From contig CAJFCJ010000009.1 in NCBI GenBank assembly GCA_904063045.1, positions 2,170,968 to 2,234,967 of the forward strand: a stretch of 64,000 nucleotides of DNA. The letters run 5' to 3'. The notes under the pieces were generated by a model. It made no database searches. It was not told where the DNA came from and saw nothing but the letters and a program-made list of their open reading frames with translations. The stretch is from Dimorphilus gyrociliatus (Eukaryota; Animalia; Annelida). Positions within the stretch are counted from its first letter, which is position 1. Every line of letters starts with the position of its first letter. The translations under genes and the position numbers were made by a program. This document shows, one piece after another, positions 20,766-41,754 of the stretch.

Positions 20766-23700
20766 ATGGATTATAACACGATACATTTTAACGAATTCAG
20801 TGGTATGTTCTTTATATTTATAATTTTATGAAATGTTATTGTTATTGTATTTTAATCCTTCACCTCTAGAATATGTTCCATTTTGTATTAGTATTTTCGA
20901 TAAGGAATTTGCACAAGCTCTCTCAACGAATGAATCTTTTGATCACATATACTCTCAATTTCCTCGTATTAAAAATTCAATGAAGAGAGAAGATCTTTAT
21001 CAGGAGAATGTTCAATTAGGAAGAGAAATGTGTCTTACTAATTGCAGAATGTTCTTATTGGAAGCCCTTCGTTTTTATTCGTTAGATGAATTCTTAGAAA
21101 TTTTTAAATTAAATGGGACAATGAAGCAGAGAGAGATCGCTCAAAAATCCTATATTTTAAATATTAACCTTTGTAAGTAGACATAATCGCTAATGATTCT
21201 AACGTAAATGATTATACGCCATCTAGTGGCAACAACAAATGAGAGATGCATAAAACACATTTAATCTTATATTTTTTCTATTTTCTCTTTCCTTAAATAA
21301 AAAAGGTAGAAAATTTTCGCCGTTGAAAGACGAATCAATTAATATATGGGGTAATTACTATTGGACAAAGCTAACTTCACAATTAAAGGAACTCTATTCA
21401 AGCACGCACTTCCAAGAAAAGAACATTCTTAAAAAAGAACATTTTTATAATAAAGTTAAATGGCTAATTGGTAATCAAACAGGTTTTTTACCGAAAAAGA
21501 CGCTATTAAAAGATTTTCCTAATTACGTTATCGATAATGATAAATTAATAGCCGATTATAACAATACTCAAGATAATCAAATAATTGAGACTATCTTGAA
21601 AATTAATTGGAGGAAATTGGTAATAAAAGGTGCAAAAGGAATAGGAAAATCTCTTATTCTGAAGAAAATTGCAGCAAGTTGGGCAAGGAAAACGGAAGTT
21701 ACTTCAAAATTAGTTCTTTTTATACCGCAGGCCTACAGAGTTCATGATTTTCAATCTCTTGTTAAAATTATATGCAGCGAACTATTGATTGACCTTGATC
21801 GTGAACTGTATTTTCATGTTGAAAAATTATTGGAGAATTTACCTGAGAACATAATACTGCTGTTGGATGACTCATTCTCAGCTGATAATCGACGAGATTC
21901 TTCTCACTGCTATCCTTATTTATCTAATTTTGTTGTTATTGCCACTAGCTCTATTAACCAATTAGAGGCGGACAAAGTACAAGATTTTAAAGTAGTAGAA
22001 ATTGAAGAGGAATTTCTAGAGCAGAGCTTTAAAAAAGTTATAAATAGAGAATATTCGATAGACGCCGATAATCTAATTAAAGAATTAACGTTCTTCGGCC
22101 TCAATTTCTTCTTATTATTTCCAAAATATTGGTTTATTATCGTAAAATTATGGCAGAAGAGATTACCAGTTAATAATTTCTTTTTAAGCCTACTAAAAAG
22201 TTGTTTTGGCATCAAGGCAAAAGTTCTTACTGATTTATTGTTAGTATCATTCAATTATATAATTAATTTGGAAAATAAGGAGAACAACGGCTACCAATCG
22301 AAATATTCTGCTATCAACTGTATATTAACAACTAACGAAGAAGGTAATCAGCAATTTAAAAGTAATAAGATAAGAAATTTATTAATTGCCGAACACTTAA
22401 TAAGAAATGAAACAGATTTACAATTATTCATTAAAAATCATGAGTTAATACGAAGCGAAGACGACACACTAATCTTTGACGTGATCTTTTATATTCTTTT
22501 GACAGTAAAGAACGCTCCTAAGGGTTTAGATGAATTAATAACCATTGAACCGTTCGAAAATCAATTAGTGATAATTATGCATACTGTTGAAAATTTTGAT
22601 AGGAAATTTGAATTATTTAACTGTCGAGAAATGGTAATAAACTTGGAAAAGTATTCGACATATTACCTTGACAGACTTATTAGAAATATTAAATTTTTCA
22701 TTTCCAAATTAAATAGAAAAGATAATTTCAAGTTGACTTTTAAATCTGATAAGGATTTAAATGGTTTTTGGAATAAAAGACTTGTTGAGTTTGTTAATGG
22801 GATATTAACTAACTTTACATCTAATAATATAAAATTAAGGGAACTATGCTTTAAAATTGGTCACGTTCCTAATGAAGAAAAGATTTTACAGAATATCAAC
22901 AATTATAAAGAAAAAGAACACAATGATTTAGCTGTAATACTCTGGAATTTGAATGAAGACTTTTATCATTCAATCAATCAGTACTTAATTTCGAACCATA
23001 ACGTTTATCTACTATGTTTAATCAAATGTAATGAATATTCTAATATTTTGGGAAATATTAGACAGAATAGGCTACAATTTATTGTTATTTATAATAGTAA
23101 TAACATTGTTCCAATTCTTCCCTTAAAGGAGAGAATCAAATTGAATTCATTAATTATTGAAAGTATACATTCGAATATAAAGAGTATTGATGTACAGAAT
23201 TCAACAAATGTTTCGTCCCGTAATTTCGAGAATAATTACAAGAGAGCTATAGAAATTTGCTCTAATTTGAACTTTGTTGATAGTTTAACCAAATTTTCTA
23301 TATCTTTTAGAAATATTGCAACAGCTATACCTGCAGTTGTTAAATCATTAAATAATAAAGAAATTACCGAATTGTACTTGGAAGATTGCGGTATTAATCT
23401 CTACTTATTAATCGATTTAAAAAGGTATCTGGTAGATTTAAAGACTTTAAAATATTTAAATGTTTGCCGTAATAATTTGGATGGAATTGTATCGAACAAT
23501 CTCAACTCTGAAATACAATGTTTACAGTTACAAAGATTAAATATGGATATGTGCGGTATATCAGACGATAGTATTTATTATTTAAATAATTATTTCTTCA
23601 GAAATAGCAATATAAAAAGGCTACAATTATCTTATAATTTTATATCTAAAAGTCTTAAAAGTCTATTACAATCAATTAATTTGGTAAACGAATTAACTAT

Positions 23701-24004
23701 TCGAAGCAACGATATAACAAAAGGAGATTTATTGTGTGCTGTAAAACTCTTTCAAAGTATGGAAGAATTAAAGAAAATTGATCTTAGCGAAAACGATATA
23801 GAAGAATCAGCTGCCAATCTATTTGAAAATCTCGGAGGAAAAGTTGAAGAAGTTCATCTCGAATTTTGCGGTATTAATGAATTAACGGCAAAATATATTT
23901 CTCATCAGTTAAAACAACGTAATAATAATTTAAAGGTAATTAATTTGAATAGAAACTTTTGTATAAGTAAAAATTACGAATGTTTAATTGCAAATTATAA
24001 ATGA
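20766..24004 (+). CDS. NACHT-LRR (NLR-like) protein with a possible N-terminal death-fold domain
   Basis: Walker A GAKGIGKS preceded by LVIK, Walker B-like IILLLDD, and RNI-like LRRs (LTELYLEDCGI, LKYLNVCRNNL, LKKIDLSENDI) in one 2.7 kb exon. Two short upstream exons start at ATG 20766. Confidence 0.85.
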
Positions 24005-31549: not shown

Positions 31550-34500
31550 ATGTTGAGCTGGCCTGAGTTTATACACATGCTTCACGAACTTGAAAGCAAT
31601 CGGATGAGAAACAGTACCTTATCGAATAAATGTCTACAAAATAGAAAGTGGTATCTCTTCCTTTTATCTTCCGCAACAACGCTTATCTTTGGAATTGTTT
31701 TAACATTGACGTTCAAATGTTTATACTTTTTATCGAAGAAGATCATTTTTGCTGGACGAAAGAAGAAAGAAAAAGATAATAGTACTGATTCAAGTAGATA
31801 CGGAAGATCAAGTGAACAGATACGATTAGGTACTCTTATTAAAATACGAACTCAGCTGTTTATATCTGGACAGACATTGAATGGTAGAATATTGGTAAAT
31901 ATTGATCTCTTTGTATATATCTATAAAACTTAATATCTTGAATTTTAGATAACTTTGTCATGTACGCTAAGTATTGCATCCTTCATCATTTACTTAATAG
32001 ATGAAACAAAGTAAGCGAACTTTCTACAGAAAGAATAAAAGCCAAAATATATTGGCTTTATAGTTCCCATATTGACCTATAAGTTCTAATTCTTTTTCTG
32101 TTGTAATAGATCGGAAAATGCTCCTGAAACTTGTATCAAATTTGCTAACAATACTCGGCAACAGATAGACTTTATCTTCCATATTCTATTTCTATTATAT
32201 TTTCTAATAAGAGTATGAATAAATTTAAATATTCAACAATCATATCCAGTGATTTAATTTTACACTTTTTCCTATACATTTAAAGTTAATAGCAGCCGAA
32301 AATAAACTTACATTCTGGATTAAATTACATTCTTTAATTGATTTATGCACGATACCACCGATTTTCTTATCAATTTACCTTGACAGACAATGGTTAGGTA
32401 AATATCTTTTAATTCATTATAATTTATTCATAAATGATTTCGCAATATATTTATTAGGATTAAGATTTATGAGGGCTTTGTGGATTATGACAGTTCCGAA
32501 AATATTAAAATATTTGAACGTGTTACAGACAAGTAATGCCATTCATATGGCTCAATTACTGGCTTATTTAGTTGGATTTTGGCTATCTTCTGCCGGTTTT
32601 GTTCATTTGGTAGAAACTTCTGGTGATCCATTTAATAATTGGGAAAACAATCAGTACTTAAGCTATTGGGAGTGCTTATATTTTTTGGTTATTACAATGT
32701 CAACCGTTGGATATGGTGATGTGACCTGTGTGACCGTTATCGGAAAGTCATTTATTATCATATTCATAATTGGTTCAATGTATCTATTCGCTAGAAATAT
32801 TGATGTTATTGTTCAAATTATCGGTAAAGCCGGTAATAATAATTGCTCTTACAAGAAACCAGCTGGAGTAAAGTAAGTTGGGTGTAAAATTGTTTATGAA
32901 TGACGTCTAATAGATTAAAAATAACAATAATTATAGGCATTTGGTAATCGTCGGTTCGATAACGTACTATTCGGTAAAGAATTTTGTAGATGAGTTCCTT
33001 CACGTTGATTGGCAACAGAAAAATCTTACACTCATCTTTCTAAATAAGTAAGTATATCTATTAAAAATTATTTAATCTCTCCTTTTTATATATAAACAAA
33101 TAAACAAACAAAAATAGACAGAAACCTGATTTGAGGACATATACAATCTTTAAAAAAAACTTTACAAACGTAAAATTCTTTATGGGAACGCCTATGAACG
33201 CCTACGACCTTGGAAGAGTTAAGGTATGCGTCTATTCATTTATATTTTTTGCTATTGATAATTTTATAATATTGAATAAAAATTGAATTAGCTAAAGGAG
33301 GCAGAAGCTTTTATCGTGATGGCTAATCCTTATACCGGTAATAGAGACGAGGAAGACGCTTCAAACGTACTAAGAGTGATAGCCGCTAAGAATTATCACC
33401 CAAAAATAAGAATTATTGTACAGTTGTTAAGCTATCAAAACAAAGGTCATTTATTAAATTTATCACCTTGGAGCGAAGATGATAAAATCATATGCGAAGA
33501 TGAAATTAAATTAGGTTTTCTAGCGCAAAGTTGTGTTGCACCTGGTTTTTCAACTTTAATATCCAATCTATTCGTATTGAAGAACGCTAAAAACTACGAA
33601 AAGAATTGTCGACATGGATATTACAGATGGCATTCAAATTATGTAACGGGTTCCGATATGGAATTATATACTTGTAAATTCTCTGAATCGTTTTATGAAT
33701 ATACTTTTGTTGAAGCTGCCGAGTAAGTAATTAATAGTTAATTCTATTTTCAATAGAAAAAAATGATTAATTACTAAGAATATAATGAATTATAATATTA
33801 TTATTCTAGAATTTGCTATACTATGTGCGATTTATTACTAATTGGTATAAAATCAACAAATTTCTGTGGGAAAAAGCGAATTATTATGAATACCTATTCG
33901 AAACATACTATTGGTCAGGATTCTGTTGGATTTTTTATATGTAGATCTAAGGATTCGCTTAGGAAACTTAATCATTTATGCAAATTATGTCACATTGATA
34001 ATAAGATGACACCGTTGCAAAAATGTAAATGTAGACAATCGAAACGTTTGTATAGTTATTTCTCTAATATTTATGTATTAATGCATGATTTCGATAAACA
34101 GTTAGATTATTTGTTGATATTGGATCCGGATGTGACGGAAATATCAATTCAAACTTTCAATATGAACATCGAAATGTCAGAAAGAGAATTAATAAAGATT
34201 TCAATATCTTGTAATTCATCACGTTTAAATAGCTCATTTGCATATTATATTTTATAATTTATTCTATTATCTATAGAATTTCTGATAATTATTCAAATCG
34301 TGATGATATTTTCGATTTCACCGGTTTATTTCATTGGTGTCCAGACGTTCCACTTGAAAAAGCAATATGGGTATGTAATCAAATCACAGGCAATTCATTC
34401 AAACAATTATTATTGTTGTTGCTTATATTTAGAAAGAAAATCTACAAACATTCAAAAATATGAAAGATCATATCGTTGTTTGTATATTTGCTCATAAAGA

Positions 34501-35948
34501 ATCTACTTCAATAGGCCTATGTAATTTTGTCATGCCACTAAGAAGTAGTTCATTTAAAAAAGACGAGTTAAAAAGTATAGTATTCGTTGGCGATAAAGAT
34601 TACCTTAAAACCGAATGGCAAACTCTTAAAAACTTCCCGAATGTTTATATTAAACCAGTTTGTAATTTTATATTTATCTATTTTTTCTATGACAAACATG
34701 TAATATATGGGATATTATGTAATTTTCTAAAAGGGTTCACCATTAAATAGAGCAAATTTAAGATCAGTTCAATTGGATCATTGTCGAATGTGCGTCATTA
34801 TTAAAAGCTATCAGACAATGGAAGATCGTATCTTAGCCGATAAAGAATCTATCATATGCACACTTGGAATAAAATCTATGAAATTTTATAAATTAGTTGA
34901 TTTGGAAGGAGACAGTTTTTGTTGTCGTAAGTATTTACATTTTTTGTGTTAATTAATAAGATAATGGATTCTTTTCTATTTACTTTGAAGCGTCTCAAGA
35001 ATCTGAGGAATGTTCACAGAATGATAATATAACAATGACAGGTAAAATGGTTATGAAAACAACAGCAAGTATCAATGAAGAAATCGATAAAAAGAGAAAA
35101 AGTAATATCTATCTTTTATAATTGTTACTTCCGATAAACGAACGTTATTGTCTAGGTTCTTCCTATAAGATGGAGATAAGTAGTTCAAAGGTACCATTGA
35201 TAACGGATGTAGGTCAGCTGCTAGATTTCTCTATTCTATGTATTTTATGGTAATAATAACTTGTTTCTTTTTTTTGTATAGAATGTAATTCCAACGTTCG
35301 ATTTCTTGATGTTGATAATTTCCACGACCCTAAACTACCTTTTAGAATGTCATTACCATTCGCATGCGGTAGTGTATTTACATCATCTCTATTAGACTCG
35401 CTATTATGCAATGTAAGAGCAACAATCTTATTATTCTGTCTATAATTTCTCTTTAATTTTCATATCTTTGATTTATATGAAAAAGACGTATTTCAATCCG
35501 GAAAGTATCAATATAATTAGAATTCTTTTAACTGGAGCCGTTCGACCAGAATTAGATCAAATGATGGCGGAAGGTGTGGGTATACTAAAAGGTTCAGAAA
35601 GCACTAAAGATCAATTAAGCAAGAAACAGTGCAGTATTCATCAATTATCAATGGATACATTTTTCAAAGAGTATATTGACAAGACGTATAGTGAAATGTT
35701 TCTATCTTTGCTGAAAGACTATGGTATTATATGCCTCGGCTTATACCGCCAATTGGAAACGGCTGAACAGTCTGGTTCATATGAAAGGTTTGTCATAACA
35801 AATCCACCTGGTTATATACTTCTTCAAAATACAGATTTGGTTTGTATACTTACATACTGTTATTATATTAATAAATTCCATTCTTATCTCCCGCCTCTAG
35901 GTTTATTGTATGGTTCCCTTTAAAACTCAAGTTGGCGATGAAAAGTAA
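31550..35948 (+). CDS. Divergent Slo1/BK-family potassium channel (S0-S6, RCK1, RCK2)
   Basis: S0 segment, S4 WLGLRFMRAL, filter TMSTVGYGDV, RCK1 DASNVLRVIAAKNYHPKIRIIVQLL and LGFLAQSCVAPGFSTL, RCK2 DHIVVCIF, LPFACG, and C-terminal RFVITNPP...TDLVY. Stop at 35946-35948. Confidence 0.9.
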
Positions 35949-36190: not shown

Positions 36191-37336
36191 TCAAATATCT
36201 GAATTAGTAACAACCTGGAGCTGGTTTGAATTTTCAACGTTATTTAATTCTGTTGTATTCTTTTCGACATTAATGAAATTACTTTCTAAACTCTTTAAAA
36301 GTTTATCTCCTATTTTTGTTATTGCTAGAAAGAATATAAAACCAGCTCCTATAGCTCCCAGAGATAATCCTAACAGTGAACCCGTTGGTTTAATAATTAT
36401 GAATGCTGTAACTATTGATGCTACATCTACTATGTAAACAAGAGCGGCTAAAACTAATCTGTGAAAATGGGTACCAAAGAGTGAACCTATTGGAGCTCCT
36501 ACGACTACAATTGGTGCGCAAACCAAAAAATAATCCCAAGTAACTGTTGAAATTCCCTCGTGTATAAAATTTCTCCAAAAAACTCCAAAAAATGAATTAA
36601 ATGCCATAAGAACTACAGATGTTGGTGTAGCAACTTTCTCAGAAACTCTAAAGAGTAGTGTTAGTATGCTAAAAGAGCATATATCTACACCACTGCCTGT
36701 AAATGATGTAAATATCCCACCGACAAAACCAGTTAACAATAGTATAGGATAGGTCCACCATTGCAGATTTACTATTTGCCTAAAAGTTTTCCTTTTTTTT
36801 CTAAAATTTAATAAGAAGAGGGAAAAAGCAAATGTAAACCAAATGCAGACAAACAACATCTTTTTCTGCGCTGCTGTTAGTTTTTTATCAACGAATTCAT
36901 AGCCAAAAATACCACCACCTATTGCTCCTATGGAACAGAATATTATAGAATTGTACTCGACTTGAACTTTCATGAAAAAAATGCTGAAAGAGGCGCAAGA
37001 CATTCCGCATGATTGAATTAATAATGAAAAATCCTTGGCCTTTACAGGATCTATTTTTAAAAGAAGAGTCATCACTGGAAATGCAACTGCTCCTCCTCCC
37101 TCGGATGTCATTCCAGCAATAATCGAACCAAAAATCATAGTTAGAGTCATAGTATATCCAGTCGTAAATTTTTCCCAAATCGAATGCTGGATAGCGTAGG
37201 AAAACCACAAAAATTCAACAATTAAAAATGGTATTAAAACTGCTATAATTCTTCTATATTTCTTCAAAAATTTACTTCGTCCTCCGAAATGTTCACCTCT
37301 AATAAATTCCTCATTATCTTCATCATCTCTTTTCAT
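36191..37336 (-). CDS. TauE/SafE (TSUP) family sulfite/sulfur-compound exporter-like membrane protein
   Basis: Multi-pass hydrophobic ORF with GMTSEGGGAVAFPVMTLLL and the second-repeat motif GFVGGIFTSFTGSGVD...ATPTSVVLM. The first ATG is at 37336; the track's 37360 start is a TTG. A short upstream exon is possible. Confidence 0.8.
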   Translation of the reverse strand: MKRDDEDNEEFIRGEHFGGRSKFLKKYRRIIAVLIPFLIVEFLWFSYAIQHSIWEKFTTGYTMTLTMIFGSIIAGMTSEGGGAVAFPVMTLLLKIDPVKAKDFSLLIQSCGMSCASFSIFFMKVQVEYNSIIFCSIGAIGGGIFGYEFVDKKLTAAQKKMLFVCIWFTFAFSLFLLNFRKKRKTFRQIVNLQWWTYPILLLTGFVGGIFTSFTGSGVDICSFSILTLLFRVSEKVATPTSVVLMAFNSFFGVFWRNFIHEGISTVTWDYFLVCAPIVVVGAPIGSLFGTHFHRLVLAALVYIVDVASIVTAFIIIKPTGSLLGLSLGAIGAGFIFFLAITKIGDKLLKSLESNFINVEKNTTELNNVENSNQLQVVTNSDI

Positions 37337-38568
37337 TTGTCCTATTGTGCAATGGCACAAAATATTATTTATATCTCTTTGAAATTATCAATATATAGTC
37401 AACAATGTCAACAAACCTTCAAAAAAGTATTTAATACACCAAACTTTCGGTCCATTCCTACAACAGTTTATTCTATCTTTAATAGTTTCTTTCTTGTTCT
37501 CTTCCATTCTAGCACAATTCAACTTCTGATATAAGAGACGGTCGACGCAATATATAGTATACGATTTACATATGAAATCAATAATAGTACCTCAGTTTCT
37601 ATACAACTTTTTGAAAACTTGTACTATCTACTAACAATGAGCATTACAATGGCGTTATATTAAGTTTTCTATTAAAAAGCATCAAAAGTATCTTCTCTAT
37701 AGTATTTAGAGAAAATTATCTATCGATTTGCTAAAATTCTAAAGCCTTTCCAAATTAAACAATAACTTGTTAAAGATCATAGAAAAAGGATGATTTATTA
37801 CATTTTTCCTATGTTATTATATGTAACAAATTTCATATATTTTCGTTAATACAGTTTTGAGGTTGAGTGACCCGAACTCGTTTTGAACAGGTCTCACCCA
37901 ACAAATATATAATAGGTGTCTTGAACTAGTATATTCTTTTGTGTATTATACTCAAAAATGTAATCCTATATTTAAGTTCGTATTGAGATAAATTTCAACT
38001 TGACATAAAAACAGTACGAGCTAACTGAATTCCCTAAATTACAAGTCCGATAATCCTTATCTATTAGGAACATTGGGATTATCTTAAATTTTTAAGACGA
38101 ATATAACAATATAAAAATTATTAATCATTTAAAAGAAATTATTATTAATACTCTTTTGAATTAATTATGCAATTAATGGAATAGTTTAAAAAGTGATGAT
38201 CAAGATTAGTATTATCGATAATACGATATTTTCAAAATATTTTGTAATATTTTGTTAATCTTCTAAAGTGTTCTTCACCTTTGTTTCTTACAGACAAGAA
38301 AATTTAGTTTGGATATTATTAACTTATTTCCATTCATATATGAATATTCAATAATCTAATAAATAGATAGAAACTTTGTGTAATTACGTATTTCCGTTAT
38401 AAAATATTCATTTTTTATATAGTCTTTTATATATATATAAATTTATATATATGTATTTTTTAACTGTATATATACTGTATATATATATATATTATTGTCA
38501 TAAAAAACTAATTAGCATAAGCTTATCAGTTAAGAAACATTCATTTCTGTACGTTTTTCTCTTTCGAC

Positions 38569-39618
38569 ATGAACATAATTGTGATTTTAACAATATTACA
38601 TGTTTGTTATGGGCTCAACTTGACACCATCCGTTAGCTATGGTATACCTTTTTCTTATTTTTCTAACGTTCATCTATCTTAAATCATCTTAATAATATCA
38701 AAATATTTCATACAGGTAAACTCTACGTTAAAGAGAGCTTATGTAATAATAGTTTTAAAATGGAGGAATCTGGATTTGAAGTGGTCAAGCTACATTCTGC
38801 ATGGTCATCAAATGAATTTGATAAAAAACGAACATGTATAGCAACAATTCAGCCTCCCTTGAATAGAGGACTAATAATAACTATTGTTGATATGAATAAA
38901 GGATTAGAATTGTGTAAAAATAAAGATAAAAATGCTCTACTTATTGAAACTAGGAATTCTTGTAAGTTTATTCGAATTCCCTGTAGTGTTCACATTCATA
39001 TAAGATATATTTTAAAACATAAACTCTTCTCAAAAAGCTTCCACATGTAAGAAAGATTTAAGAAAAATGGGAATTATTTCTTTACCAAACCAATTAATAA
39101 AAGTAAAATTAAAGGATAATGATTTTGGATTCAAATTAATCCTTACAACATATCAATCTCAAAATAAACAAGATGTTTGTCAACCAAATCAATTTCAATG
39201 TATACATAATGGTATTAAAAATTGTATAAATTCTAATCTCCAATGCGATGGGTATAATAATTGCGGTGATAGCAGGGATGAGACTTGGTCTTCGGCAAAT
39301 TGTTTTTTCAACCTAATTTTGGATCCAATTCAATTTTCAGTTCTAATTTCAATATTTATATTATTTCTCATTGGAATATCAATAATATTCTGCCTTTGTT
39401 GCTTTAAAAAGAAATCTCATAGACTGGTTTGTAAAATGTGTTTAATATGTAATACTCTAATATATAATATATATTATCAGGTTCAACAACAATTTGGCGG
39501 AGTCACAACACCGTTTATAAGTTCAGCTGACAAAACATTTGACTATGATGAAGCCAATCTAAACTATGAAAATATCATAAAACCCCCAGCTTATAACTCT
39601 CTCTTTCCCTACAAATGA
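38569..39618 (+). CDS. Single-pass membrane protein: signal peptide, degenerate CUB-like region, LDLa, transmembrane helix and PPxY tail (LDLRAD-like)
   Basis: Signal exon MNIIVILTILHVCYG. LDLa CQPNQFQCIHNGIKNCINSNLQCDGYNNCGDSRDE. Transmembrane helix followed by CLCCF. C-terminal PPAY. Confidence 0.75.
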
Positions 39619-40297: not shown

Positions 40298-41754
40298 TTA
40301 ACGGTCAACTTCACCAAAAACGATATCCAGGGTTCCGATGACAGCCACAACATCGGCTAACATGAAACCCTTTGTCAGTTTGTGAAGGGCGGCTAAGTGA
40401 GCAAATCCTGGCGCCTTGATTTTACACCTGTATGGTTTATTGCTACCATCAGAGACTAAATAGACACCGAATTCTCCTTTTGGTGCTTCGATAGCTGTAT
40501 ACGTGGAACCTGGTGGTACCAAATAACCCTCCGAATATAATTTGAAGTGATGGATTAGTGCTTCCATGCTATCCTTCATTTCTCGTCGTTTAGGAGGAGC
40601 AACCTTGTTATCATCTACTTTTATTTCACCTTGTGGCATCTTATTTAAACATTGCATGATAATATTCATTGATTGCCTCATTTCCTCCATTCTAATTACG
40701 TAACGATCAAAACAATCGCCATTGACTCCTATTGGAACGTCGAATTCAACTTTGTCGTAAGCATCGTAGGGTTGAACTTTTCTTATATCCCACTTTATGC
40801 CCGATCCTCTAAGCATAACACCGCTAAATCCCCAATTGAGAGCGTCTTCAGCCGAAATAACACCAATACCCTCTAAACGTTGCCTCCAAATTCTATTATT
40901 TGTTAAAAGATCGTCGATTTCGTCCAAACGTTGACCAAACTTAGTCATCCACTCGTATATATCATCCATCAAACCTAGAGGTATATCTCTATCGACTCCT
41001 CCTGGACGAACGTAAGCAGCATGCATACGGGCTCCCGAAACTCTTTCATAAAATTCACATAGTTTTTCTCTCTCTTCAAAGAACCAAAAGAATGGAGTAA
41101 TGGCACCTACATCCAAAATATGAGTACCAATACCCATAGTATGATTCATTAGTCTTGTTATTTCGCCAAAGAGTGTTCTAATCCATTTAGCTCTTTCAGG
41201 AATTTCTATATTAAGTAATTTCTCAACAGCCAAAGAGTAAGCCTGCTCATTGCACATCATAGAACAGTAATCGAGTCTATCAAAATACGGTAGAGCTTGC
41301 AGGTAAGTTTTATGCTCTATCAATTTCTCAGTGGCTCTATGAAGTAGTCCAATATGAGGATCAGCTCTCACTACTGTTTCTCCGTCCAGAGTTAATACTA
41401 AACGCAGTACTCCATGAGCCGCCGGATGTTGGGGTCCAAAATTGAGAGTTATATTTTGTACTTTCTTGTCAGTTCTCTGTTTGCAATCGAAGATATGCTA
41501 TGTAATATAATACATAATTTTGAATGTCGATTGTTTACCTCGAGTCTCTTTAAGTTTTTTGGAAGGGTTTTCCACTTGGCCATCTCTTCATTAGCCGGGT
41601 ATAAGACTGGGGATTCGAATTTTTTGTAATATTCTGCATCAGGATACCAGCTAGATCCATGGCGTTTTGATGCTACGACTGGAGTGGCAAAACGAAGTGG
41701 GGTTAACAGAAGGCTGGCATTTTGCGCGACTTTGTTAATAACCTTTGCCGCCAT
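40298..41754 (-). CDS. NDUFS2: NADH dehydrogenase (complex I) 49 kDa subunit
   Basis: Transit peptide [34 protein letters not shown], and C-terminal [10 protein letters not shown] single intron lies near the 5' end. Confidence 0.97.

Follow-up and report, generated by a model that had tools for sequence, protein, structure and literature searches.

What kind of channel is encoded by a Slo1-like gene, in the window of 64,000 nucleotides that was analysed, that has lost together many of the residues by which BK channels sense voltage, Ca2+ and Mg2+? BK channels are a main model for the allosteric coupling of voltage, Ca2+ and Mg2+ sensors to one gate. We consider it likely that the locus encodes a divergent Slo1 (BK)-type K+ channel alpha subunit that is expressed and selectively maintained, and whose gating we infer from its residues.

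The gene occupies positions 31550-35948 of the forward strand, in 18 exons with an intact frame of 1080 amino acids (Table 1). Its 17 introns are 54-99 nt long, all GT-AG, and its 5' UTR extends to at least 31400. A spliced contig of 3458 nt from a public run (X2), which may come from the assembly's own strain, has joints matching every intron; transcripts from a second run (X1) match several introns and support only parts of the gene. The gene is transcribed and spliced. Exon 10 is revealed by the transcript contig only and is absent from the model made from sequence, and an alternative exon 14 donor at 35041 is ruled out by the contig, which joins at the longer donor. The product has the full Slo1 architecture, with S0, S1-S6, a TVGYGD filter, two RCK domains, BK_channel_a and Slowpoke_C. 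Pfam finds Ion_trans and Ion_trans_2 in exon 5, PF22614 in both RCK domains, PF03493 (3.8e-21) and PF21014 (2.7e-23). Canonical Slo1 channels (KCNMA1, slowpoke, slo-1; structures 5tj6, 6v22, 7pxe) have this architecture and these domains in common with it.

Table 1. Exons and functional positions of the Slo1-like gene, in window coordinates.
Feature	Position	Strand	Content and evidence
Exon 1	31550-31894	+	N-terminus, S0 helix (31649-31714), S0-S1 linker; transcript joint 31893/31948
D99 equivalent, Ile (exon 1)	31841-31849 (KIR)	+	Alignment to fly Slo 7pxe, KDW vs KIR
Exon 2	31949-32010	+	S1; gene model and transcript
Exon 3	32110-32212	+	S1-S2 loop, S2; D153 and R167 equivalents kept (QQID...YFLIR); transcript joints
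Exon 4	32286-32397	+	S2-S3 loop, S3; N172 to Glu (AAEN, 32292-32303), D186 kept; aligned to human Slo1 169-204
Exon 5	32458-32872	+	S4, S5, pore helix, filter, S6, start of S6-RCK1 linker; ungapped vs Aplysia Slo1, E 1e-43
Trp (TGG) at R213 gating-charge position	32481-32483	+	X2 contig, 0 differences; Trp also in ortholog and paralog
K+ selectivity filter TVGYGD, intact	32703-32720	+	Alignment to Aplysia Slo1
Altered cytosolic S6 end and linker, FARNIDVIVQIIGKAGN	32787-32837	+	S317R, Y318N, P320D, E321V, E324Q, RKK to AGN
Exon 6	32937-33047	+	RCK1 start; D362E, H365 and D367 kept, E374T; aligned to human Slo1 344-378
Exon 7	33118-33223	+	RCK1; H394N, Q397N, E399K (NVKFF, 33167-33181); aligned to human Slo1 383-415
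Exon 8	33292-33722	+	RCK1 core, BK_channel_a; M513L, R514K, E535 kept (SDMELYT, 33652-33672)
Exon 9	33810-34045	+	RCK1 end; CKLCH (CxxCH) at 33979-33993; transcript
Exon 10	34102-34210	+	RCK1-RCK2 linker; X2 contig joints 34045/34102 and 34210/34277
Exon 11	34277-34370	+	Linker, RCK2 start; transcript
Exon 12	34433-34657	+	RCK2 (Slo-like_RCK, E 1.7e-17); transcript
Exon 13	34734-34926	+	RCK2 (Slo-like_RCK, E 5e-12); transcript
Exon 14	34991-35101	+	Variable RCK2 loop; long donor 35101 used, joint 35101/35156
Exon 15	35156-35212	+	Strand into calcium bowl; gene model
Exon 16	35282-35412	+	Calcium-bowl exon; 93% protein and 77% DNA identity to ortholog
Degenerate calcium bowl, RFLDVDNFHDPK	35299-35334	+	D895N, D896F, D897H
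Exon 17	35486-35839	+	Slowpoke_C domain (E 2.7e-23); transcript
Exon 18, TAA stop (35946-35948)	35901-35948	+	Gene model and transcript

Residues were called from phmmer alignments to solved BK structures (human 6v22, Aplysia 5tj6 and fly 7pxe), with human numbering taken from 6v22. The earlier note had listed a set of substitutions, and all of them persist against the solved structures; none is restored. S4 reads LRFMRALWIM where Aplysia Slo1 has LRFLRALRLM, which puts Trp at R213 and keeps R207 and R210, and the X2 contig covers this TGG codon without differences. The calcium bowl is NVRFLDVDNFHDPK against the canonical NVQFLDQDDDDDPD, with the core DQDDDDDP turned into DVDNFHDP. Alignment to human Slo1 bears out the replacement of the Mg2+ ligands E374 and E399 by Thr and Lys. 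The S6 end, FARNIDVIVQIIGKAGNNNCSY, aligns without gaps to Aplysia Slo1 and has Asp, Val and Gln at P320, E321 and E324, with R329, K330 and K331 replaced by Ala, Gly and Asn; with Asp at 320, one acidic residue therefore remains beside the lost E321/E324 ring. To this list we add D99I, N172E, E219K and S317R. Since D99, N172, E374 and E399 are all replaced, four of the four Mg2+ ligands are changed. Set against canonical Slo1, then, the protein is without R213, the Mg2+ site, the D895/D897 bowl ligands, the E321/E324 ring and the YVPE S6 end. The features said in the earlier note to be retained are indeed present in the alignments to BK structures (S0, D153, R167, D186, TVGYGD, D367, E535 and CKLCH), and H365, D261, R207 and R210 are kept as well. 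Of the canonical sensor residues, only the ligands of the RCK1 Ca2+ site, D367 and E535, survive; Lys replaces R514 and Leu replaces M513. The CxxCH heme motif, which had been noted as retained, is present but is not special to this gene, because nearly all of the Slo1/Slo3 family has it. The roles in BK channels of R213, D99/N172/E374/E399, D367/E535, D895/D897 and E321/E324 are described in PMC4319557.

A search of representative proteins found no full-length ortholog, only a fragment of 135 amino acids (P0001); this fragment led to contigs of a related species that hold an ortholog and a paralog. The ortholog adjoins the same TauE neighbour gene. Of about 20 derived positions, the ortholog matches our gene at nearly all and the paralog at most. 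The paralog has W213, T374 and K399, together with the NIDVIVQ S6 motif, an acidic residue at 172 and a degenerate bowl. The core of the S6 end is identical in all three genes, and this S6 motif is absent from all other relatives sampled. The bowl is identical in the ortholog and reads RFLDLDNFQEPD in the paralog. The paralog has Gln in place of the His at D897 and Leu at H365, which leaves no obvious alternative ligand site. Position 172 is Glu in our gene and Asp in the paralog, and position 399 is Lys in all three. Because the paralog shares nearly all of the derived residues, the derived state predates the duplication. Over 989 codons compared with the ortholog, dN is 0.17 and omega is 0.08-0.17 against a saturated dS, which points to strong purifying selection on the gene. 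That so many canonical functional residues are replaced together would suit a decaying or functionless copy in which the losses reflect relaxed constraint; however, the frame of 1080 codons is unbroken across its 17 GT-AG introns, two runs contain spliced transcripts, and neither the omega values nor the sharing of the derived positions with the ortholog and paralog fit decay. We find this explanation hardly credible, and the lack of expression or neutral evolution that would have undone the earlier note's reading is not what the transcripts and omega values show.

The gene is of Slo1 type, as the earlier note had supposed. For each exon, the top PDB hit is a canonical Slo1, and the RCK1 exon scores 131 bits with Slo1, 84 with Slo3 and 39 with Slo2 (KCNT1). 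Membership of Slo2 (KCNT) is rejected by these scores and by the presence of S0, and membership of Slo3 by its score and by a vertebrate Slo3 clade that excludes the gene. Over its N-terminal 617 residues the protein is 44% identical to a canonical insect slowpoke; at full length, the closest representative compared reaches 36%. The gene, its ortholog and its paralog form a clade (100/100) inside bilaterian Slo1-type channels. The canonical spiralian Slo1 clade (100/98) excludes it, as does that of vertebrate Slo3 (100/99), and it also falls outside the canonical protostome clade; this deep placement is weakened by long branches and odd amino-acid composition. Those same long branches and the odd composition, flagged for the clade in the trees, would suit a fast-evolving ortholog or recent duplicate of the lineage's own Slo1, displaced by long-branch effects and belonging to no old separate paralog lineage. 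Genomes of the dinophilid type are compact and fast evolving, which also counts in its favour, as does the weak link to divergent genes of Owenia (84/7). Nevertheless, grouping the clade with canonical annelid Slo1 is rejected by an AU test (p = 0.019), the related species has at least two genes of the derived type, and the annelids Capitella and Lamellibrachia carry a fully canonical Slo1. We regard a fast-evolving ortholog as quite improbable. A paralog lineage shared among annelids with three divergent Owenia genes was suggested by quick trees (92 SH-aLRT); in the careful tree support fell to 84/7, and for this reason we do not claim kinship with them.

Loss of R213 together with a basic residue (Lys or Arg) at E399 recurs in many unstudied invertebrate Slo1-like genes, which have only an automatic "BK channel" annotation. 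Examples are Owenia fusiformis A0A8J1T6U9, A0A8S4NR19 and P0219, Tubulanus XP_074641051, Acanthaster XP_022111761 and Seison KAI3384474, along with genes of tardigrades and flatworms. Searches with the Owenia proteins return mostly canonical Slo1. P0219 was considered as a canonical Slo1 of Owenia and rejected, having R213A and E399R. The full combination of losses was found in none of the divergent invertebrate genes sampled. Nearly all of them keep the S6 proline, unlike our gene, and the calcium bowl is still acidic in Owenia P0219 and in the Acanthaster protein. The Slo1-like gene is the extreme of a continuum and not a unique case; among the sequences compared, its proline-less S6 end is its most distinctive trait.

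Vertebrate Slo3 (KCNU1, a pH-gated sperm channel) is the partial parallel proposed in the earlier note, being also derived from Slo1, with no Asp-rich calcium bowl and with an altered Mg2+ site. The convergence stands for the calcium bowl and for part of the Mg2+ site; it does not extend to R213 and the S6 P-E..E motif, which Slo3-like vertebrate sequences keep and our gene has lost. In our trees the vertebrate Slo3 clade groups with a starfish gene (92/77). The idea of pH gating fares poorly, H394 being Asn and H365 being Leu in the paralog.

What follows on gating and conductance is extrapolated from mammalian mutagenesis to a protein whose full-length identity to the representatives compared does not exceed 36%. 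We propose a K+-selective channel in which the RCK1 calcium site would be the last canonical sensor. Mg2+ activation would be gone, all four ligands being changed, as is R213, the electrostatic target of Mg2+. The acid at 172 and Lys399, conserved in the three genes, are probably paired as fixed charges at the former Mg2+ position between voltage sensor and RCK1, a pairing predicted from sequence and lying between neighbouring subunits. The calcium bowl would not bind Ca2+ through D895/D897 and would be kept for a structural or interface role. Voltage dependence would be lowered and not abolished, because R207, R210, D153, R167 and D186 remain. With D367 and E535 as the sole canonical sensor, the most likely mode is therefore Ca2+ gating at the RCK1 site, combined with a weak dependence on voltage. 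Loss of the E321/E324 ring and of RKK, together with Arg317, is predicted to lower outward conductance and alter the energetics of the gate, and E219K with P320D may rewire the S4-S6 contact.

Two of these changes have engineered counterparts. The pair of Glu/Asp172 and Lys399 mirrors mouse Slo1 N172D/E399R, in which an engineered 172-399 charge pair changes voltage dependence and intrinsic gating (PMC3557308). The natural Lys219 mirrors the charge reversal E219R (Zhang et al. 2014, as cited in PMC4319557), which according to that paper interacts with E321/E324 at the S6 end. The mutant phenotypes are not directly transferable, because the natural protein also loses R213, D99, E374 and the E321/E324 ring.

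The regions best conserved with the ortholog are the core transmembrane and RCK interface regions (exon 5, 86%; exon 16, 93%), and the bowl loop, which sits at the inter-subunit assembly interface (PMC4319557), is strongly constrained despite the loss of its ligands. This would be consistent with a modulatory subunit, as the earlier note had offered among its readings, one that forms poor homotetramers and co-assembles with a more canonical Slo1, tuning its sensitivity to voltage, Mg2+ and Ca2+ and its conductance. Against it, the filter and pore are intact, which makes a homomeric channel equally plausible, and the two paralogs of the derived type are explained no less well by an independent channel class; we think a modulatory subunit unlikely. 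Within our preferred reading of a maintained Slo1-type alpha subunit, we put forward, tentatively and as a possibility only, that the three genes represent an old distinct Slo class. In such a class the Mg2+ bridge would have become a permanent acid-lysine pair between 172 and 399 and the S4-S6 contact would have been rewired by E219K/P320D, giving a small-conductance K+ channel that is gated by RCK1 Ca2+ or tonically biased. By analogy with Slo3, the gene may have a sperm- or male-specific role.

The gene offers a natural, constrained protein in which the gating charge, the Mg2+ site, the bowl ligands, the conductance ring and the RKK cluster are lost together and the RCK1 site is kept, and which carries, at 172/399 and 219, the very charge swaps that have been engineered for studies of interdomain coupling. 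It is a way to ask how much of BK gating the RCK1 pathway alone supports, and whether the 172-399 pair replaces Mg2+. Invertebrates have generally been described as having a single Slo1 gene (PMC4270693, PMC5337896); in contrast, our data show annelids and other spiralians with several divergent Slo1-like genes. If the proposed class is real, the recurrent Lys or Arg at E399 would represent a widespread and so far unrecognised "built-in Mg2+" solution among invertebrate Slo1-like genes.

The gene at 31550-35948 (+) encodes a Slo1-type channel, and its model is supported by spliced transcripts. The window is AT-rich (G+C about 29%), and along the locus short open frames follow one another, separated by GT-AG introns of 54-99 nt. 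We built the gene model by hand, and then compared it with contigs of two public sequencing runs, X1 and X2. For X2, a single 3458-nt contig reproduces the locus minus all introns with no base differences. For X1, a coral metatranscriptome from a separate study, there are five short contigs with identities of 95-99%, several of which span exon junctions also seen in the X2 contig. As corrected by the spliced contigs, the model comprises 18 exons and codes for 1080 amino acids, with the terminal stop as the only one. The product includes the Pfam domains Ion_trans, Ion_trans_2, BK_channel_a and Slowpoke_C, and a Slo-like_RCK domain in each half. A tblastn search with the product reveals no further copy in the window. 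In exon 17 (35632-35680), an X1 contig has four base differences, two synonymous and two replacements (D1004A and F1006Y) that fall in a variable loop, which suggests that this contig comes from a different strain or from a close relative inhabiting the coral sample. Other genes in the window appear in the table; the NACHT frame resembles an intronless NLR-like gene.

Features of the window and of one related-species contig (L009)
Feature	Position	Strand	Evidence
893-aa single open frame, NACHT domain and weak LRR match	21323-24004	+	domain search
Trp codon TGG at R213 position	32481-32483	+	exon 5 alignment
Exon 9 end	34045	+	spliced contigs
Linker exon	34102-34210	+	spliced contigs
Exon 14 donor (the distal one)	35101	+	spliced contigs
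389-aa intronless ORF, TauE/SafE sulfite-exporter domain	36191-37360	-	Pfam E 3e-27
ORF with LDL-receptor class A domain, neighbour of the NDUFS2-like ORF	39067-39618	+	domain match
ORF matching the 49-kDa respiratory complex I subunit (NDUFS2-like)	40298-41371	-	E 4e-126
Complete paralog in the related species	L009:1714-6526		14.7-kb Logan contig, same samples as ortholog

The earlier note, made from the sequence alone, had proposed that this channel lacks most canonical BK gating residues. We aligned the exon translations to all solved structures (residue numbers are those of human Slo1), and proper alignment does not restore the canonical residues; all the substitutions listed in that note hold. 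Exon 5, which spans human residues 206-338, needs no gaps when aligned to Aplysia Slo1 (E 1e-43) or to human Slo1. Its S4 reads LRFMRALWIM where the canonical sequence is LRFLRALRLM, so that R207 and R210 are retained, R213 is Trp and E219 is Lys. The same exon keeps the selectivity filter TVGYGD and ends S6 with FARNIDVIVQIIGKAGN, in which S317R, Y318N, P320D (an Asp in place of the proline), E321V and E324Q are changed and RKK becomes AGN. The calcium bowl is altered as claimed: the gap-free alignment of exon 16 has DVDNFHDP in place of DQDDDDDP, so that Asn and His take the places of the side-chain ligands D895 and D897. As for the Mg2+ site, the earlier note had two altered ligands, E374 and E399, and we find all four altered: D99I (exon 1), N172E (exon 4), E374T (exon 6) and E399K (exon 7). 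Exon 6 (human 344-378) also has D362E, exon 7 (human 383-415) has H394N and Q397N, and exon 8 has M513L and R514K. The residues reported as retained are indeed present, namely S0 (exon 1), D153 and R167 (exon 3), D186 (exon 4), D367 (exon 6, which also keeps H365) and E535 (exon 8).

The derived residues are shared with two genes of a related species. A representative-set search with exon 8 finds no full-length twin of the window gene, but yields a 135-aa protein fragment, P0001, at 77% identity. Four runs of a single study supplied the contigs for P0001 and those retrieved with exon 17, which together cover amino acids 1-767 and 784-1080 of an ortholog in the related species. Orthology is supported by a common neighbour, since in both the related species and the window the Slo gene is followed by a TauE/SafE gene on the other strand. 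The ORF in the window is tail-to-tail with the Slo gene, and the related-species contigs L005 and L006 have the same layout. Cys-loop receptor ligand-binding-domain ORFs also lie beside the Slo ortholog, at L001:1188-1601 (-) and L006:2008-2358 (-). The ortholog shares W213, K219, the S6 motif, T374, N397, K399, E172, I99 and L513/K514, and its calcium bowl is identical; the bowl exon is the most constrained, with 93% protein and 77% DNA identity. The 989 codons aligned give a dN of 0.17 and a saturated dS (2.1 by NG86, 0.92 by LWL85), and hence an omega of 0.08-0.17. With this omega, and with transcription and splicing seen in the X2 contig, the gene is neither unexpressed nor neutrally evolving, two outcomes that the earlier note had named as counting against it. 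The paralog has the same S4 Trp and S6 motif, T374, K399, a degenerate bowl (RFLDLDNFQEPD), Asp at the N172 position and Leu at the H365 position. Because ortholog and paralog both carry the derived residues, we infer that these are older than the duplication and were retained afterwards.

The family is Slo1-type. Against PDB structures, the RCK1 exon scores 131 bits for Slo1, 84 for Slo3 and 39 for Slo2. Trees were made from cluster representatives and named canonical sequences, in quick runs and then a careful run. In the careful tree the window gene, ortholog and paralog form a clade (100/100) flagged for long branches and odd composition, with the transcript protein P0032 as sister (100/98). 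This clade lies within bilaterian Slo1-type channels (97/97 versus a coral sequence), outside the vertebrate Slo3 clade (100/99) and outside the canonical spiralian Slo1 clade (100/98), which includes Lineus, Capitella, Lamellibrachia and molluscs and in which the annelid and nemertean members checked have fully canonical motifs. An AU test rejects grouping with canonical annelid Slo1 (p = 0.019, for a group defined after the tree was seen). A grouping with three divergent Owenia genes (84/7) is not robust. Separately, the Acanthaster starfish protein P0065 ("alpha-1-like") joins the vertebrate Slo3 clade, represented by the Slo3-like proteins P0067, P0070 and P0106 from shark, gar and turtle. 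This grouping has a support of 92/77 in the careful run and of 97 (SH-aLRT) in one of the quick trees, and it hints that the Slo3 lineage may predate vertebrates, contrary to PMC5337896.

Individual losses recur among Slo relatives. Of 72 representatives covering S4 (50% identity set), just 30 retain Arg at R213, and Trp occurs there in 12; R213 is missing in the three Owenia genes, a nemertean gene, Macrostomum, tardigrade genes, a starfish gene and a coral gene. E399 is replaced by Lys or Arg in Owenia, Seison, flatworms and Acanthaster. Of seven key acidic or basic residues, 16/43 full-length representatives have lost five or six, and the window gene has lost all seven; its S6 end has neither Pro nor E321/E324, and this motif occurs in none of the relatives sampled outside its clade. 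Six eukaryotic proteins from ENA/Logan (P0055, P0074, P0075, P0098, P0113 and P0121) form a well-supported Slo-like clade whose S4 ends in FIWLT, with Trp at R213, and whose acidic bowl is mostly kept (QFLDFGDEDEPD). Because this clade falls outside bilaterian Slo1, we infer at least two independent origins of Trp at R213. Invertebrates have been described as having a single Slo1 gene, with teleosts the only prior exception and paralogs reported in trichocephalid nematodes (PMC4270693), and invertebrate genomes surveyed yielded Slo1 only (PMC5337896). Our literature search found no published study of these divergent Slo1-like genes.

In BK channels, R213 carries the principal gating charge of S4, and Mg2+ bound at D99, N172, E374 and E399 acts on it electrostatically; the two Ca2+ sites are D367/E535 and bowl D895/D897; E321 and E324, with which E219R interacts, account for as much as half of the outward conductance (PMC4319557). 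Charges introduced at 172 and 399 interact across the interface between voltage sensor and RCK1; with the attractive pair N172D/E399R, the voltage dependence of the open state is shifted and intrinsic opening is reduced (PMC3557308). All three members of the window-gene clade have a natural equivalent of that pair, Glu or Asp at 172 and Lys at 399, although, unlike the mutant, the window gene has neither the Mg2+ ligands nor R213. Based on these residue roles, the natural pair and the lost Mg2+ ligands and R213, we read the product as a putative K+-selective channel that lacks both a Mg2+ pathway and a bowl Ca2+ site. The main rival reading is a heteromeric, modulatory subunit. As a K+-selective channel, it would have a weakened voltage sensor, a fixed interdomain charge pair (172/399) in place of the Mg2+ bridge, and RCK1 as the remaining canonical sensor, and with its inner mouth rebuilt its conductance should drop.
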